DNA of 64,000 bases from Podarcis muralis (Eukaryota), in contig NC_135655.1 in the NCBI RefSeq assembly GCF_964188315.1, forward strand, positions 62,124,001 to 62,188,000, in the 5' to 3' direction. The translations under genes and the position numbers were made by a program. This document shows positions 23,727-41,119 of the stretch, one piece after another (position 1 is the first letter of the stretch; each line of letters opens with the position of its first letter). The notes under the pieces were generated by a model. The model worked only from the letters and a program-made list of their open reading frames with translations, ran no database searches and had not been told where the DNA came from.

Positions 23727-24817
23727 GTTGTTGTTGTTTAGTCGTTCAGTCGTGTCCGACTCTTCGTGACCCCATGGACCAGAGCACGCCAGGCACCTCT
23801 GTCCTCCACTACTTCCCGCAGTTTGGTCAGACTCATGCTGGTAACCTCGAAAACACTATCCAACCATCTCGTCCTCTGTCGCCCCCTTCTCCTTGTGCCC
23901 TCCATCTTTCCCAGCATCAGTGTCTTCTCCAGGGAGTCTTCTCTTCTCATGAGGTGGCCAAAGTACTGGAGCCTCAGCTTTACGATCTGTCCTTCCAGTG
24001 AGCACTCAGGGCTGATTTCCTTCAGAATGGATGCGTTTGATCTTCTTGCAGTCCATGGGACTCTCAAGAGTCTTCTCCAGCACCATAATTCAAAAGCATC
24101 AATTCTTCGGCGATCAGCCTTCTTTATGGTCCAGCTCTCACTTCCATACATCACTACTGGGAAAACCATGGCTTTAACTATACGGACCTTTGTTGGCAAG
24201 GTGACGTCTCTACTTCTCAAGATGCTGTCTAGGCCTGTCATTGCCCTTCTCCCAAGAAGCAGGCGTCTTTTAATTTCGTGGCTGCTGTCACCATCTGCAG
24301 TGATCATGGAGCCCAAGAAAGTAAAATCTCTCACTGCCTCCATTTCTTCCCCTTCTATTTGCCAGGAGGTGATGGGACCAGTGGCCATGATCTTCGTTTT
24401 TTTGATGTTGAGCTTCAGACCATATTTTGCGCTCTCCTCTTTCACCCTCATTAAAAGGTTCTTTAATTCCTCCTCACTTTCTGCCATCAAGGTTGTGTCA
24501 TCTGCATATCTGAGGTTGTTGATATTTCTTCCGGCAATCTTAATTCCAGCTTGGGATTCATCCAGCCCAGCCTTTCGCATGATGTATTCTGCATATAAAT
24601 TAAATAAGCAGGGAGACAAAATACAGCCTTGTCGTACTCCTTTCCCAATTTTGAACCAATCAGTTGTTCCATATCCAGTTCTAACTGTAGCTTCTTGTCC
24701 CACATAGAGATTTCTCAGGAGACAGATGAGGTGATCAGGCACTCCCATTTCTTTAAGAACTTGCCATAGTTTGCTGTGGTCGACACAGTCAAAGGCTTTT
24801 GCATAGTCAATGAATCT
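23727..24817 (-). mobile_element. Bov-B LINE, 1.09-kb 5'-truncated copy with an uninterrupted RT reading frame
   Basis: FIDYAKAFDCVD, GVRQGCILSP, YADD. (CAA)n tail. 11-bp TSD GTCTGGATCAC at 23716-23726 and 24818-24828. Confidence 0.97.
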
Positions 24818-34038: not shown

Positions 34039-34465
34039 CAGGAACCTACGTAATTGCCTTATGCCATGATAGAAAGAGTACTGGCCCATCAAACCCAGTA
34101 CTTTTCATACTGACTAGCAGCATCTCTCCAAAATTTCATACCTGGCTCTTTCCTTGCCCTAGCTGGAGATGCCAGGAGAAGAAGAGTTTGGATTTGATAT
34201 CCTGTTTTATCACTACCCGAAGGAGACTCAAAGCGGCTAACAATCTCATTTCCCTTCCTCCCCCACAACAAACACTCTGTGAGGTGAGTGGGGCTGAGAG
34301 ACTTAAGAGAAGTGTGACTAGCCCAAGGTCTCCCAGCAGCTGCATGTGGAGGAGCAGGGAAGTGAACCCAGTTCACCAGATTACAAGTCCACCACTCTTA
34401 ACCACTACACCACACTAGCTCTCTACCTTTTGCATATAAAATGTGTGCTCTACCATTGAGCTCTT
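34039..34465 (-). mobile_element. Squam2-like SINE split by a Squam3-like SINE (34176-34423, minus)
   Basis: Squam2 3' half at 34039-34175 and head at 34424-34465 flank a complete Squam3 copy (head ...accactacaccacactagctctc). Confidence 0.7.
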
Positions 34466-35136
34466 GCTCATTCCCTTATTCAGCCATTTATAAACATTGT
34501 GGGGGAAAGATGGCTGCCGGCTGAATGACTTGAGGGAACTAAAGCTTGAGCTCTGCGTTAGTATTGTGTTATTTGTGCTATTTTATTAGTGTTTTATTAT
34601 TGTTTTAAGTGATAAGGAAGATTAATAGTTGAACGAAACCTGCTGTGAACTTTTACTGCAGCTGAGAGAGTATAACTCCCTAAAGGAAAAGAACGTGACT
34701 AGAGAGAAATCCTTGGGAGGAAAGAAAAATTGCTTACCTGATAAGGGCCTGGAGAGGCCTTGGAACCTCTCCCTTTTACCTAAAACTGCCTTGCGGAGAG
34801 CGCTGCGACGGAACTAATGATCCTAGTTTAATTAAGTTTTTAACTCAAAGTTTTAAGGTACTGAGACCCTGAAGGAAGATATATGTATATATATTTTAAA
34901 GTGGTTTTTTTTTTGTTTTTTTTTTTTTTTTTGAGCCTCTTGATTGTTGCCGGGGGAGTACTAGAGCCTCTGCGGTAATCACTCTGCAGCAATTGAAGAA
35001 GTAAACTCACCCCTGCTTCTCCACCACGTTGTCTTTCTTCTCTTTTACAAATACCTCCTGTCTATTTATCTCAGTCAATCCATCGTAGCGTGTTTTTTAC
35101 AACAATAAAGAAATAATTTACAACTTTAAAGAAACA

Positions 35137-37245
35137 ATGGTGACGACCAGGAGTGGCTGCAAAACCTCAGGCTTTTCTCTGAAGGCTGTAAGACCCACCT
35201 TTAAAAGAACCACTCAAAAGAAAGCACAAACAAAAATCACTCGTTTCTACATGAACAGAGCAAAATGTGGAACAAATGAGGAAACGACTGAAATGAATGA
35301 GAACAAGAACAAGAAGGGAAGAGAAATTCTACTCTCTCCTACCAATCTCTCTTACAGCCATAGGGAAGGACTGGATATGCAAAGAAAGGAGTGTACTAAA
35401 AGCAGCGATAAAAGCCTGAATATATTGGAAGCAACACAAAATATCCTCGATACAGCTGATGAAACATCCCCGAAACGGATAGCCAAATCCCAAGTTCCCC
35501 CCGAACCATCGTTAGATCAAAAAATGGAGGAACTAATGTTAAAACAAATTTCGGAATTGGCCTCGGGAAATATTAAACCTTCGAAAGACTCTTATCTTCA
35601 TTCCCACGAGACAAATGAAGAAGGTCTCTCAATCATCAAATGGCTAGTGCTCCTTACCGAGGACATTGAATCCATAAAGTCCTACTTGGACAGTTGCACA
35701 AAAATTCTTACCATCATGGCTGACTCCTGTAAAACTCTCTGGAGAAAACCCGTTGGGATGCCTGTAGAATCGGAAAGTAATCATGGCATCGCTTCCACCC
35801 TCTGTAGGAGTGGCCCATTAAGGAAGGGTAAGAAAGCCTGCAGAGCTAATGCTTATAAAAGGAGATCCATAGTTGTAAAAAATGTTAAAAAAAGTAAAAA
35901 CATAAAAAATCTTAAGACAGTGCATTATAAAAAAATGGTTTTTAAAAAGCTTTTTAACCTACTCGAGAGCACATCAGCCTCTGGGACCAGAGGGAACCTG
36001 GTGAAGTCTTTAGCCAAGAAGTCAGTTAAACAGGATTTGTCCCCAAACCTCTGTGCTGACAAAGCTTTAGATTGTCTAAAATCTTCAGCGCTTGCTCCAC
36101 CACCAAGCTCTAAGCAAGATTTATTGCCCCAAGATCCATGGTCCTACGTTTTAACCATAGACAACTCCAAATCCAAGAAGGAGAGCATTTCAACAAATAA
36201 GAACTGGAAGCTGGTGTTGCTTCAAAACAAGCTTGTTTTTTCAAGCTATCCTAAGCCTCCAGGATTTTTATCTCAAGAGGATCGCAAAGTCCATCTACTG
36301 AACTTCCTTAAGGCATACATGCCAGGTACTTTGAGTAATCCCTCGGAGTTGGACCAAGTGGAATATCTATATTTTGATGGCTTGCTTGCCAGGGCGGTGG
36401 TCACATTCCATGATCGGAGATTGGCAAAACTGATATATAAACACAGAGAACATCTAAAGACAAGTGGTGTAAAAATATCAAGGTACTTTAAAAATGAGGC
36501 CTCTCCTATCCCACTATTACCCAGCTCTGCAACCTCGACTGCAGCACCTCATCAAAAGGCCGAATACCACACTTTAATTGATATAAAAGCCACTGAGGAC
36601 TTGCCTAATCACCACCCAGAGTTACTTACTAATGATCTTCAAAGACCAGACTCTCCCGGGACTTTATATGAGGCGAGCCAAGGTGACGGGTTTGAAAGTT
36701 TTGAAAATAACTTAGTTTACTCCTACTGCGCTCTCCCCCAAGAAACTCAGAACAAAATACTTGATAGATTGGATAACCTTCGTTCTTGTCTGACAAATCT
36801 GACGAAGGACCAACCGGGACCACACAACCAAAACATATCTGATTATGTCCCAGATCAGGCTTCATGCTTCTATCGTCACGAGCTGGGTTTATGGATCGGG
36901 AAACCCTCCGTTACCCCAGGCCAATTGGTTGTTGCGGAGATGAATCCATCCTCTCAGATCTTGGAGCCGAAACGCCCCTCCCATAACCCAGCTCGTATGC
37001 AATCCATCCCAGAGGCAAACCTGGTCACTACATTAGCATGGGATAAAATGAGAGAATTAAATGAGATTGAATTGGGCTCCCCAAATAAAGTGCCCAGCAT
37101 GGGTGCGCCAGGTTGCAATCCTAGCATTCCACCCTCCTCAAATGTGAGCATACTGAATACATCTTTAAACATCATTGAATTAGCATCTGAACTATCTGAA
37201 CCCGCTGTAAGGGCTAATAGTAAGAACCAGAGGAATTTGGTGTGA
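35137..37245 (+). CDS. LINE ORF1 (702 aa): basic, largely low-complexity, with a central RRM-like segment
   Basis: Uninterrupted ORF upstream of APE-RT. The segment LVFSSYP...RAVVTFHDRRLAKLIYKHREHLKTSGVKISRYF resembles LINE ORF1p RRM/CTD spacing (inference). Confidence 0.8.
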   Translation: MVTTRSGCKTSGFSLKAVRPTFKRTTQKKAQTKITRFYMNRAKCGTNEETTEMNENKNKKGREILLSPTNLSYSHREGLDMQRKECTKSSDKSLNILEATQNILDTADETSPKRIAKSQVPPEPSLDQKMEELMLKQISELASGNIKPSKDSYLHSHETNEEGLSIIKWLVLLTEDIESIKSYLDSCTKILTIMADSCKTLWRKPVGMPVESESNHGIASTLCRSGPLRKGKKACRANAYKRRSIVVKNVKKSKNIKNLKTVHYKKMVFKKLFNLLESTSASGTRGNLVKSLAKKSVKQDLSPNLCADKALDCLKSSALAPPPSSKQDLLPQDPWSYVLTIDNSKSKKESISTNKNWKLVLLQNKLVFSSYPKPPGFLSQEDRKVHLLNFLKAYMPGTLSNPSELDQVEYLYFDGLLARAVVTFHDRRLAKLIYKHREHLKTSGVKISRYFKNEASPIPLLPSSATSTAAPHQKAEYHTLIDIKATEDLPNHHPELLTNDLQRPDSPGTLYEASQGDGFESFENNLVYSYCALPQETQNKILDRLDNLRSCLTNLTKDQPGPHNQNISDYVPDQASCFYRHELGLWIGKPSVTPGQLVVAEMNPSSQILEPKRPSHNPARMQSIPEANLVTTLAWDKMRELNEIELGSPNKVPSMGAPGCNPSIPPSSNVSILNTSLNIIELASELSEPAVRANSKNQRNLV

Positions 37246-37314
37246 CATCCGGAATGCACCACGCATACCTCACTAGCACCCTTAAATCAAAGATCTCTCC
37301 AAAATATTTCTATT

Positions 37315-40300
37315 ATGTCATGGAATGTAGCTGGACTCTCATGTAAATTAGCTGATTCTGATTTTATAAATTTTCTTGAGTCTTATGATATAATACTTTT
37401 GCAGGAAACATGGTCTCTTAAACCTTTAAATATTCCTAATTTTATTACTTATAATCTACCCGCTACTAAAATGTCAACAAAAGGTCGTCCTAAAGCCGGT
37501 TTGATCTGTGGTATTAAACAGTCTTCTAACCTTAAAATTAATTATATCAGAAATATTGGACAGTATGCACAATTGTTATCATTTTCCATTGTTTACAGGG
37601 AAATTCTTCTTTTAAATATATATTTTCCTCCCGTAGAGTTGGAAACTAGACCAGATTATGGTTGGAATGTAGTCTCGGAAGAGTTGTATTTAATACGTAG
37701 TAAATCTCCAAATATCCCCCTGATTGTAATGGGAGACACCAATGCTCGAATTGGATCAGACAATACAGCTCTCTATAAACGCTATGTCTCAAATCTAGCT
37801 GAAGATGCCCCACTTCCATTGAGAATAGGGAGGAATTCAAAGGACATCATTATTAATAAAGCGGGAGGAAAACTTTTACAATTGGTTTTAGAATTTAATC
37901 TCTCATTCTTGAATGGCTCAATGTGGCCGGATATTCCAGGAAATTTTACTTTCAGCTCCAAAAGGGGTAGGAGCGTAATCGACTATTCTCTAGTTTCCGT
38001 TGAAATGTTAAATGAAGTTGCCTCTTTTACAGTTGTTCCTCGCTCAGAGAGTGACCACTTCCCAATAGTTTTAGAGATGTACAGGAACCCTAGAAATAAT
38101 GATATCTGTCCTCTTATTAGTATTGATAAGACCATTTATGCCAAAAGAATTTATATAAGTGATAAAAATAGGGAGGATCTATTAGCAGTATTTGAAAATA
38201 ACCCAGTTATTCTCGAATCTGTGGCTAACCAAAATTTGATGCCCTTGGAGGACAATGATTGTTATTATAAGACCATCCAGGAATTATTTTCTTCTTTTTT
38301 AGACCCTCACTTCAGCAACAAACCTTCAAATAAGTATAACTGGTTTGATAAAGATTGTATTAACTATAAGAAAGAACTTAGAACTTGTCTAAAAGAAGCC
38401 TATATTACCAACTATCAAGGTCTCTGGAAGACTTATTTTGAAATGAAAAGTGTATTTAAGAACATGCTCCTGGAAAAAAAATCTGAGTTCGCACTAGCCA
38501 AATGGTCTAAAATTGTTATTGCATTAGAAGTTAAAGATACCAAAACTTTTTGGTCACTTCTCTCAATAAAAGATATCACTGATTTCCCTAATATAAGCGA
38601 TGAGGCTTGGATTTCACATTTTACTGCTGTTTTTTATGATCACCAAGTTTGTAAAAAGGAAAATTTTAAATTTTCTCTGGCAAAAACCACACAATTTCAA
38701 ATTACTGTTGAGGAGATGAAAAGGATAATTCTCTCGTTTAAGCAAGGGAAGTCACCTGGTATGGACGGCATTCCAATAGACCTGTTGAGATTAGATGTAG
38801 AATGGTGGGCCATTAAACTTGTGCCGCTTTTTAATTCTATCTATCACTCAGCCCTCGTACCTAAATCGTGGAACAACTCAATAGTGGTACCGATCTTTAA
38901 AAAAGGTGATAGGAATTGCCAAGAGAATTACAGGCCTATAAGTTTGTTACCATGTATAAGTAAAATCTATGCCAAATCTCTGCTTATTAAATTGGAAGAA
39001 TGGATGCTGTCAAAAGGTCTACCTGGTAAAGAGCAGGCTGGTTTTAAGGCAGGCTCATCAACTCTGGACCAGTGTCTAGTGTTAAGTCACCTTGTGGATA
39101 AATATGTCATGAGAAATAAACGAAAACTCTTTGTGGCATTTGTGGATTTAAAAAGTGCCTTTGATTCGGTCGACCGCAACAAACTATGGACTAAACTAGA
39201 ACACCTTGGTATCGACCCATATCTACTTACACTGATTCAAAGTTTACATTCTAATAACCAAATATATGTTAAAGTATCAAAAGATGGTAGACTTGCAGGT
39301 CCTATTCTGAATAATCGAGGAGTTAGGCAAGGCTGTATCTTGGCCCCTACCCTATTTAATCTATTTTTATCTGACCTACCATTATTTCTTCAAAACGCAA
39401 CCACTCATACTCCTTATTTAAACAATAGCCCACTCTTTTTATTACTTTATGCAGATGATGCTGTAATTATTTCACTTTCTGTTTTGGGTTTAAAAAAATT
39501 ATTTAAGAGTTTCTCAAACTACTGCTCTCTCAATAATCTCAAAATTAATTATGACAAGACAAAGATTATGCAATTCAGAAAGAGAGGGAACCCAAAAGGC
39601 TGTATAATTAATGGACATCTAATACAGGAAGTTAAGCACTTCAATTATCTGGGAATCACATTCAAAAATAATATGAACTGGAATACACATATATGTGCTG
39701 CAATAGTTAAGGCCAAAGTGACAGCCCACCATATTAAATCCTACTTTTTTTCTCCAGTAGGAAACAGATTTATTCCAGCTGTATTGCAAGTGATTGACAT
39801 GAAACTTTGTGCCCAACTTTTATATGGCACACCAGTGTGGATTTTAGGTGACCTCAAGAGGTTGGATAAATTTCATGCATCCCTTCTGAGGTCATTATTA
39901 GGACTTGCAAATTCTGTAAAATATGAAACAATATGTTGTGAGCTGGGAATATTGCCTTTATCAGTAAGAGCATGGCTGAGGACCTTGAAATATTGGATCT
40001 TCCTCCATTATAGAGCCCTAGCCCCGAGTTCTCTACTTTACGATCTTTTAAGTGATAGTGTAACCTACAATCTATCATTGATTTGTAGGAGAAAACTTGA
40101 TTCGATAGGGCTCACTCTAACTGACTTTGTAATCTCTGATCCCAAAGATACATGGGAAATTATCAGGAAGACTCTTACAGAAAAAAGTGTTCTCGCCATG
40201 CTTGAGGTTGCAAAGCACAGCACCTGCTCTCCTATCCACTTAAATCTGCCTTTGTGTAGAGATTTCCAAAAGGGATATATGACAAATCTGAAGAAACATG

Positions 40301-40629
40301 AATCGTGTAGGCTGTTTATGTTGGCCAGATTTAACATGTTTCCCTCAGTGGTAGTGAGAGGAAGATACTTAGCTATCCCAGAATCAGAGCGTCTCTGCAA
40401 ATGCAGAAAACAGGAACCCGATACTCTAGAGCATATATTCTTTTCCTGTGATTTTGGCGGTTATGCCAGAAGACAATTATTTGAGGCCCTAAAATTTAAT
40501 AGACAGTCTTTTACACAACCAACTGTTCAGGACCTGCTGGCGGACAGCGATGATCAGATTACTTTAATAGTGGCTGAATTTTTAAGTGCTGTCCATGAAG
40601 AAAGAAAGGGCCATGATAAAGAGACTTAG
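37315..40629 (+). CDS. LINE ORF2 (1104 aa): APE endonuclease, reverse transcriptase and CCHC knuckle
   Basis: APE motifs SWNVAG, LQETW, NIYFPP, GDTNARIG, VIDY, SDHFP. RT motifs NYRPISLLP, EQAGFK, FVDLKSAFDSV, GVRQGC, YADD, YLGI. C-terminal CKCRKQEPDTLEHIFFSC. Confidence 0.97.
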   Translation: MSWNVAGLSCKLADSDFINFLESYDIILLQETWSLKPLNIPNFITYNLPATKMSTKGRPKAGLICGIKQSSNLKINYIRNIGQYAQLLSFSIVYREILLLNIYFPPVELETRPDYGWNVVSEELYLIRSKSPNIPLIVMGDTNARIGSDNTALYKRYVSNLAEDAPLPLRIGRNSKDIIINKAGGKLLQLVLEFNLSFLNGSMWPDIPGNFTFSSKRGRSVIDYSLVSVEMLNEVASFTVVPRSESDHFPIVLEMYRNPRNNDICPLISIDKTIYAKRIYISDKNREDLLAVFENNPVILESVANQNLMPLEDNDCYYKTIQELFSSFLDPHFSNKPSNKYNWFDKDCINYKKELRTCLKEAYITNYQGLWKTYFEMKSVFKNMLLEKKSEFALAKWSKIVIALEVKDTKTFWSLLSIKDITDFPNISDEAWISHFTAVFYDHQVCKKENFKFSLAKTTQFQITVEEMKRIILSFKQGKSPGMDGIPIDLLRLDVEWWAIKLVPLFNSIYHSALVPKSWNNSIVVPIFKKGDRNCQENYRPISLLPCISKIYAKSLLIKLEEWMLSKGLPGKEQAGFKAGSSTLDQCLVLSHLVDKYVMRNKRKLFVAFVDLKSAFDSVDRNKLWTKLEHLGIDPYLLTLIQSLHSNNQIYVKVSKDGRLAGPILNNRGVRQGCILAPTLFNLFLSDLPLFLQNATTHTPYLNNSPLFLLLYADDAVIISLSVLGLKKLFKSFSNYCSLNNLKINYDKTKIMQFRKRGNPKGCIINGHLIQEVKHFNYLGITFKNNMNWNTHICAAIVKAKVTAHHIKSYFFSPVGNRFIPAVLQVIDMKLCAQLLYGTPVWILGDLKRLDKFHASLLRSLLGLANSVKYETICCELGILPLSVRAWLRTLKYWIFLHYRALAPSSLLYDLLSDSVTYNLSLICRRKLDSIGLTLTDFVISDPKDTWEIIRKTLTEKSVLAMLEVAKHSTCSPIHLNLPLCRDFQKGYMTNLKKHESCRLFMLARFNMFPSVVVRGRYLAIPESERLCKCRKQEPDTLEHIFFSCDFGGYARRQLFEALKFNRQSFTQPTVQDLLADSDDQITLIVAEFLSAVHEERKGHDKET

Positions 40630-41119
40630 TGGTACTTAATGGTAGGTGATGTTGCTGTGCTGTATTATATTATCTATGTACATAGATTTATTTCTTGGAG
40701 TTAAGAATAGGTCTGAGATAAATTGTGTTCGCTGAGCCTGTATTTTATACAGTCTGTATATGATGTTTGCTTGATAATGTGTGGTGTGCTATGCCTAATA
40801 AAGGATTTTGAATTTGAATTTATAAACATTGTTAGCAGTGCTGGAAGTTCCTCCTCTTTCTGATGATTTTCCAGCACTCCCTAGCAAAAGGAATCGGTTA
40901 TACATTTACACTGAGCTTTCATTCCTTCACTCTCAATTGCCCAATTGCCCTTAGTGGAATCATCACTTGGCCAAATCTGATTGGCTACGTCATGTTGTGA
41001 TGCCATTCCATTCGTTATGTGATTCCTCATGGCATGGAATGTCAATGCAGCTAATTGCAGAAGGAGGGAAATGTAGCAGATTGGGATTTTAAAAACTAGC
41101 ACTGGTGCAGCAGTTAGCA

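Follow-up and report, generated by a model that had tools for sequence, protein, structure and literature searches.

The translation of the second open reading frame (ORF2) of long interspersed nuclear elements (LINEs) from a bicistronic RNA is still debated, and the accepted models are reinitiation-like and lead to a separate ORF2 protein (ORF2p). For some Arabidopsis ATLN LINEs, Noma and colleagues reportedly found in 2000 that orf1 and orf2 share one frame and are separated by an amber codon and, for others, that the two overlap in the -1 frame; suppression or frameshifting leading to an Orf1-Orf2 protein is said to have been proposed there, as a claim that was computational only. For LINE-1 (L1), ORF2 is thought to arise by unconventional termination-reinitiation (PMC5972666), and reviews name reinitiation, internal ribosome entry sites, stop-start coupling and 2A peptides for LINE ORF2 (PMC3894237; PMC5972666), while readthrough was not reported for LINE ORF2 in the literature searched. 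The present work deals with a LINE found in a stretch of 64,000 nucleotides of Podarcis muralis DNA (the window; NCBI RefSeq assembly GCF_964188315.1, contig NC_135655.1, positions 62,124,001 to 62,188,000 of the forward strand; coordinates given without a locus name count from its first letter), in which ORF1 and ORF2 form one reading frame interrupted by a single UGA followed by C.

By taking into account the related families, programmed UGA readthrough yielding an ORF1-ORF2 fusion emerges from the sequences as the best explanation of this arrangement, and probably as the correct one. The broader proposal, that the vertebrate LINEs of this clade would make their endonuclease and reverse transcriptase only as a fusion of the ORF1 protein (ORF1p) with ORF2p, mostly by UGA-C readthrough and in at least one family by -1 frameshifting, is more tentative, and is given somewhat less than an even chance.

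The ORF1-ORF2 junction

The initial annotation described the junction correctly in every detail. ORF1 ends with GTG TGA (37240-37245), base 37246 is C, and the 23 sense codons that follow in the ORF1 frame (HPECTTHTSLAPLNQRSLQNISI, 37246-37314) contain neither a stop nor an in-frame ATG and join directly to ATG 37315 (MSWNVAGL...) of ORF2. That the two ORFs share one frame is given by their starts (37315-35137 = 2178 = 3 x 726), and the length of the read-through product, initially put at approximately 1830 amino acids (aa), was recomputed as 702+1+23+1104 = 1830 aa. In a single copy the arrangement is within chance (a shared frame has a probability of approx. 1/3, to be multiplied by roughly 0.3 for a run of 23 codons without a stop), and the pattern is non-random only when families are compared.

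ATG 37315 is located 69 nucleotides (nt) past the ORF1 stop, with no UAAUG or AUGA overlap. An out-of-frame ATG is found at 37254, 9 nt after the stop, and is kept in L003, the other copy of the window family; its 30-codon ORF overruns ATG 37315. Scanning reinitiation at 37315 would thus be unfavourable, since a scanning ribosome would reach 37254 first.

Conservation of the junction across families

Word-indexed protein searches gave 28 ORF2 matches, two of them close, and one ORF1 match, the closest database protein to ORF2 being P0001 of Podarcis muralis (94% identity). An exhaustive profile search with the ORF1 alignment (A1) against 1.84 billion representatives returned 37 homologues, the longest of 751 aa, and no ORF1-ORF2 fusion among them; a profile search built on four families added no new close clade member. 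The DNA around eleven homologues was read at the junction, with one or two copies per family, for a total of ten families: the window element with L003, L001 with L002, L007 with L008, and L004, L005, L009, L010, L011, L012 and L013 on their own. The N-terminal parts of the endonucleases are 27-48% identical between families (94% for the window versus L003), and over its full length the window ORF1 is 30% identical to that of L001 and 89% to that of L003, the size of ORF1 in the clade being 640-750 aa. In P0012 and P0013, which are more distantly related, the endonuclease is preceded by a long, fused N-terminal extension; distant matches carry zf-RVT and RNase H.

The comparison of related families, which the initial annotation had put forward as a check, was in line with its suggestion. 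A TGA is present in the ORF2 frame directly before the endonuclease in nine of the ten families (table 1), and the base at +4 is C in eight of these nine, with L013 as the exception. ORF1 and ORF2 have a common frame in eight of the nine families that could be judged with tblastn (window with L003, L001, L005, L004, L010, L011, L012 and L013). Within the spacers, of 6-60 codons, none of the nine UGA families shows another stop, apart from an additional one that lies further upstream in L004, a copy with decay elsewhere too.

Table 1. Junctions of the nine UGA families. Codons are counted from the stop to the Trp of the SWN motif, and the position of Met is relative to this Trp.
Family	State of the copies	Stop and following codons	Codons, stop to Trp	Met
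Window, L003	intact	TGA CAT CCG	25	-2
L001/L002	intact	TGA CAA CTA	14	-10
L005	ORF1 (751 aa) and ORF2 (1121 codons) intact	TGA CTA AGA	16	none
L004	decayed	TGA CTT CTT	6	none
L009	decayed, ORF1 frame unclear	TGA CAA TTG	6	none
L010	ORF2 frameshifted further on	TGA CTA CCT	15	-5
L011	ORF2 frameshifted further on	TGA CAA CAG	38	none
L012	ORF2 frameshifted further on	TGA CGT AAT	14	none
L013	ORF2 frameshifted further on	TGA AAG ACA	60	none

The alignments suggest that stop, +4 context and frame were retained while the flanking codons and the spacer length turned over: stop and frame appear to have persisted, because codons and spacer length around them differ in almost every family. In L004 and L009, which are from the same genome, Asp-TGA-C is found five codons before SWNIMGW, so that the stop would be older than the split of these two subfamilies. 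The elements' own ORF2 stops, taken as a control, are TAG-T, TAA-T, TAA-A and TGA-G, and their variety indicates that TGA-C at the junction is not a compositional habit. Rough odds, computed as if the families were independent when in fact they share ancestry, are about 1e-3 for at least eight of nine families in the same frame (with a null of 1/3), between 5e-5 and 2e-3 for TGA in nine of nine, and about 2e-5 for C at +4 in eight of nine (C frequency near 0.2).

Six of the ten families, including the fully intact L005, lack a Met in the stretch that runs from the stop, or from the frameshift window, to the catalytic Asn, and the Mets of the window element, L001 and L010 fall in non-homologous alignment columns (-2, -10 and -5, respectively). 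As read from these alignments, ORF2 is without a conserved start codon in the clade.

Within the window family, the two copies differ by 6% at the nucleotide level, and L003 keeps TGA-C and the 69-nt spacer, in which there are 4 substitutions, without indel or stop. The ratio of non-synonymous to synonymous substitution rates (dN/dS) is 0.40 for ORF1 and 0.20 for ORF2, and values below 1 in both ORFs indicate that the window element and L003 diverged along active lineages keeping TGA-C and the spacer.

A related family in the -1 frame

The tenth family, L007/L008, differs in its junction. Its ORF1 is of 640 aa, is homologous to the others (E 7e-28) and ends with TAG. ORF2 is shifted to the -1 frame, which is open from position 2214 onwards, and no Met precedes KVLSWNIAGW. 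The 118-nt overlap of the two frames (L007:2214-2331, the same in L008) contains a single in-phase slippery heptamer, U UUU UUA, at 2289-2295. Hairpins are predicted downstream of it in L007, with a fold no better than that of shuffled sequences (z +0.62; pseudoknots are outside the model). An endonuclease tree, itself poorly resolved, grouped L007/L008 with UGA families (89/89). On these grounds L007/L008 is a candidate for programmed -1 frameshifting in a LINE, and the presence of another type of recoding signal at this junction would imply that the fusion is what selection maintains.

The start of the endonuclease and the fold of ORF1p

In the AlphaFold2 model of the spacer and the endonuclease (mean predicted local distance difference test, pLDDT, 77.5), strand 1 is formed by ISIMSWNV (residues 21-28; pLDDT of the block, 92), in which Met is the fourth residue, and spacer residues 1-17 are predicted to be disordered. 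The top structural matches of the endonuclease model are human LINE-1 endonuclease structures (E about 1e-14). Positions -5, -3 and -2 relative to the Trp of SWN are conserved as hydrophobic in all families; the Met of the window element sits at Leu(-2) and that of L010 at Leu -5, both strand positions that are conserved as hydrophobic elsewhere. Because ATG 37315 is placed mid-strand in the model, a start at this codon would remove three residues of strand 1. The earlier remark that a hydrophobic strand precedes SWNV, and would be left out with this start, was thus borne out by the predicted strand and by the three conserved positions.

A Pfam search with ORF1 gave no family above threshold, hence no Transposase_22, and an RRM match that was sub-threshold only; a protein atlas look-up for ORF1 gave nothing useful. 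AlphaFold2 predicted for the ORF1 core (window about 36211-36495) a beta-alpha-beta-beta-alpha-beta fold with pLDDT mostly above 90. Its best low root mean square deviation match in Foldseek was the human LINE-1 ORF1p trimer (2yko; 3.0 A over 95 columns), at a weak E-value of 3.8e-3, and other RRM domains also matched with weak E-values. On the basis of this model, ORF1p is plausibly an RNA-coating partner, in line with the analogy with gag.

With respect to ORF1 of other clade members, that of L010 (L010:4125-9298) is 50% identical to the window ORF1, the L010 ORF2 being only about 33% identical to the window ORF2 and no closer than those of the other families. Because its ORF1 is near to that of the window and its ORF2 is not, the sequence of L010 suggests that ORF1 modules are exchanged between LINE families. 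A clade remnant consisting of ORF1 only, with no ORF2 after it, was also found in an intron of a homeodomain gene model (L006:9805-11638), where it is annotated as part of the spliced gene.

Proposed mechanism and alternatives

According to the proposed mechanism, elements of the clade carry a long RRM-containing ORF1 with ORF2 in the same frame behind a single leaky UGA-C (often UGA-CAA or UGA-CUA). The majority of ribosomes would stop at the UGA, giving ORF1p, and a minority would insert a near-cognate amino acid, translate the linker and enter the endonuclease, the outcome being the approximately 1830-aa ORF1p-ORF2p fusion at a fixed low ratio to ORF1p. UGA-CUA, UGA-CGN and stop-CAA-UUA-like sequences are established readthrough contexts, and UGA-CUAG alone leads to over 1% readthrough in human genes (PMC13517186). 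The likely mode would be a context-driven, low-level readthrough, sufficient for an enzyme wanted in trace amounts, and the related L007/L008 family would obtain the same fusion via a -1 frameshift at U UUU UUA. Of the three alternatives listed by the initial annotation, this corresponds to programmed readthrough, which has gained support from TGA-C, the frame and the stop-free spacers across families. We infer from the sequences both the occurrence and the efficiency of readthrough, as well as that the fusion would be the active form.

Several observations weigh against readthrough. The window context, UGA CAU CCG, is not a classic readthrough hexamer, and the window family does possess an ATG, with A at -3 of ATG 37315. 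Downstream of the UGA, no significant RNA structure was predicted for the window (z +0.56) or for seven further families, and z ranged from +1.3 to -1.1 over nine junctions. With no conserved structure, the efficiency would rest on the local context and may be low. L005 is the only family with a stable RNA structure predicted (L005:2864-3003; z -2.44, 3/200 shuffles), starting about 18 nt past the UGA, and a pseudoknot model like that of murine leukaemia virus finds no support, with no significant post-stop structure except in L005. Kinship of the families, each represented by one or two copies, means that the counts are not fully independent, and five of the AUG-less families are known only from decayed copies. 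As for the spacer itself, the 4 non-synonymous and 0 synonymous differences between the window and L003 over its 69 nt are too few to judge codon-level constraint. Finally, the reinitiation route of LINE-1 ORF2, as Alisch and colleagues are said to have described it in 2006, needs no AUG, so that the lack of an ATG is not proof of readthrough.

The principal alternative is an ordinary bicistronic LINE, in which ORF1 ends at the UGA and ORF2 is made separately by termination-reinitiation or by an AUG-independent start of the kind put forward for mammalian LINE-1, in the window from ATG 37315 or close to it; the common frame would then be a relic or under some other constraint. For LINE-1 the accepted model is reinitiation, and for SART1 it is stop-start coupling (PMC5972666), an ATG is present 2-10 codons ahead of the SWN Trp in the window family, L001 and L010, the A at -3 of ATG 37315 would suit a start there, and a stimulatory RNA structure was not found. 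Such an element, however, is not predicted to show a common frame in eight of nine families, TGA only, C at +4 in eight of nine and no extra stops over 6-60 codons, nor six families with no ATG before the catalytic Asn. The available Mets are non-homologous, two of them substitute strand residues, and a start at 37315 deletes part of strand 1; in addition, the out-of-frame ATG 37254 stands in between and neither UAAUG nor AUGA is present. A termination-reinitiation of the SART1/calicivirus type, which relies on adjacent or overlapping stop and start codons, is not supported by the junctions, in view of the distance between the two in the window (69 nt, with the out-of-frame ATG in between) and the six families without ATG. 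By weighing these points, separate synthesis of ORF2p is considered unlikely; reinitiation, the second possibility raised in the initial annotation, is weakened by the six ATG-less families and by ATG 37254, and retains this lesser share of probability. Still less probable is the coexistence of both routes, namely a low-level readthrough fusion together with an ATG secondarily gained in some families, including that of the window, and giving a free, slightly truncated ORF2p. The ATGs of three families, each at a different and non-homologous position, would be compatible with recent, independent acquisition in elements already using readthrough, but a change from Leu to Met in the strand may be neutral, and nothing points to ATG use.

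The third possibility of the initial annotation, a nonsense change in a family with one long ORF1-endonuclease-reverse transcriptase frame, was rejected and is now very improbable. Vingi and Ingi are described as single-ORF elements (PMC3894237; PMC13708176), and the N-terminal extensions of P0012 and P0013 show that fusions to the endonuclease exist among distant relatives. Against it, L003 also has the TGA, as do eight other families in which its position is not homologous, and no ORF1 homologue reaches a fusion length, the 37 found among the 1.84 billion representatives ending at 751 aa. With a stop or a frameshift in all ten families, assignment to the single-ORF LINEs of the Vingi/Ingi/L2-2 type was dropped. 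The exclusive use of UGA in nine families would also agree with its decoding as selenocysteine; an Rfam scan of 34400-40950 (E up to 1) detected no selenocysteine insertion sequence (SECIS) and no other RNA family, and the stop is not at a conserved position of a protein motif, making this the most remote of the explanations. Programmed readthrough of the UGA stays, among those considered, the probable one.

Anatomy of the element

The coordinates of the element are collected in table 2. The window element is an intact, recently inserted and complete non-LTR (long terminal repeat) retrotransposon of the apurinic/apyrimidinic (AP) endonuclease type, as judged from the exact 14-bp target-site duplication on both sides and from a sequence free of N throughout. 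Its membership of the LINEs is given by endonuclease and reverse transcriptase domains within one ORF (ORF2; Pfam) and by the target-site duplication around a full-length copy. The Cys and His columns of the zf-RVT knuckle are invariant in the four families compared.

Table 2. Features of the LINE in the Podarcis muralis window.
Feature	Position	Strand	Remarks
5' target-site duplication, ATTTATAAACATTG	34486..34499	+	exact 14-bp repeat of 40818-40831
5' untranslated region	34500..35136	+	between duplication and ORF1 ATG; upstream stops in ORF1 frame
ORF1, 702 aa, gag-like protein without Pfam family	35137..37245	+	
RRM-like conserved domain of ORF1	36211..36495	+	AlphaFold2 and Foldseek
ORF1 stop UGA with +4 C, proposed readthrough site	37243..37246	+	
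In-frame, stop-free 23-codon spacer, linker of the proposed fusion	37246..37314	+	
Out-of-frame short ORF, 30 codons, spanning the ORF2 ATG	37254..37346	+	
First beta-strand of the endonuclease (ISIMSWNV), predicted, with ATG 37315 inside	37306..37329	+	AlphaFold2
ORF2 from first ATG, 1104 aa	37315..40629	+	
AP-endonuclease domain	37315..38058	+	Pfam Exo_endo_phos, ORF2 residues 1-248
Reverse transcriptase domain	38899..39663	+	Pfam RVT_1, residues 529-783, E 3.6e-33
C-terminal Cys/His knuckle	40384..40455	+	sub-threshold Pfam zf-RVT, E 0.008
3' untranslated region	40630..40817	+	AATAAA and short TTTGAA-like repeat, without long poly(A)
3' target-site duplication	40818..40831	+	exact 14-bp match to 34486-34499

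At its end (window 40780-40831) the element has AATAAA and a short TTTGAA-like repeat, not a poly(A) tail, and the 14-bp duplication may in part belong to this element tail. A self-BLAST of the window revealed no further copies of the element. On the minus strand, a reverse transcriptase fragment with approximately 27% identity to ORF2 (24065-24814) is a remnant of a different LINE.

Implications

The conserved frame, the leaky UGA, the AUG-less ORF2 and the one family with a -1 slippery site make the fusion a directly testable answer to the question of how ORF2 is translated. If correct, a covalent ORF1p-ORF2p fusion would set the ratio of the two proteins and enforce cis-preference, with ORF2p tethered to an RNA-coating protein, and neither free ORF2p nor a dedicated initiation of ORF2 would be needed. 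The gag/gag-pol strategy of retroviruses would then have evolved in non-LTR retrotransposons as well, and the clade would offer a compact natural case of context-only UGA readthrough in vertebrates. The matter bears on reptile LINEs as gene-insertion tools (PMC13708176). Annotation practice would change as well: at L005:2867-3019 gene callers start ORF2 at the first ATG/GTG, so that about 50 codons are lost and with them the catalytic Asn and Glu motifs, and annotations of the clade made with gene callers would systematically truncate the endonuclease.

Comparison with known systems

The clade shares with human and mouse LINE-1 the combination of AP-endonuclease and reverse transcriptase, an RRM-type ORF1 protein, a short spacer (63 nt in L1, 69 nt here) and the expectation of a very low ORF2 output. 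It differs from LINE-1 by the single UGA-C and the frame that are conserved across families, by the many families without an ORF2 ATG and by the lack of Transposase_22 in ORF1; the L1 spacer, by the account of the initial annotation, holds further stops. A long ORF1 and a Cys/His knuckle after the reverse transcriptase are not known to be typical of RTE-group elements. Vingi/Ingi elements (of reptiles, hedgehogs and trypanosomes) resemble the clade in having AP-endonuclease and reverse transcriptase without RNase H and a Cys/His knuckle after the latter, and in their presence in lizards. By description they are single-ORF and compact (PMC3894237, PMC13708176), whereas ORF1 of the clade has 640-750 aa. 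Thus, the clade is not L1 by its ORF1 and is not single-ORF Vingi, from which it is set apart by these descriptions only.

With ATLN LINEs, as they are reported to be, the clade would have in common the two-mode pattern of junctions; those are plant L1-clade elements, and use UAG instead of UGA-C. As in the silkworm SART1, a non-LTR element is found in which translation of ORF2 would depend on ribosomes finishing ORF1, but SART1 has a UAAUG overlap and makes a separate ORF2 protein (PMC5972666), and no stop-start overlap is present in the window. With respect to viral UGA-C readthrough in alphaviruses and dicistroviruses, UGA-CUA and UGA-CGN of the clade match type II viral contexts (PMC13517186).

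The analogy with gag-pol of Moloney murine leukaemia virus (MoMLV) is that of an upstream structural RNA-binding ORF and a downstream enzyme ORF in one frame with one stop, and of a fusion arising at a low fixed ratio, which in the present case is a proposal. MoMLV uses UAG-G and a pseudoknot, unlike the clade, in which no conserved downstream structure is present, and the elements of the clade differ from gammaretroviruses also in being non-LTR and in having no protease to free the enzyme.

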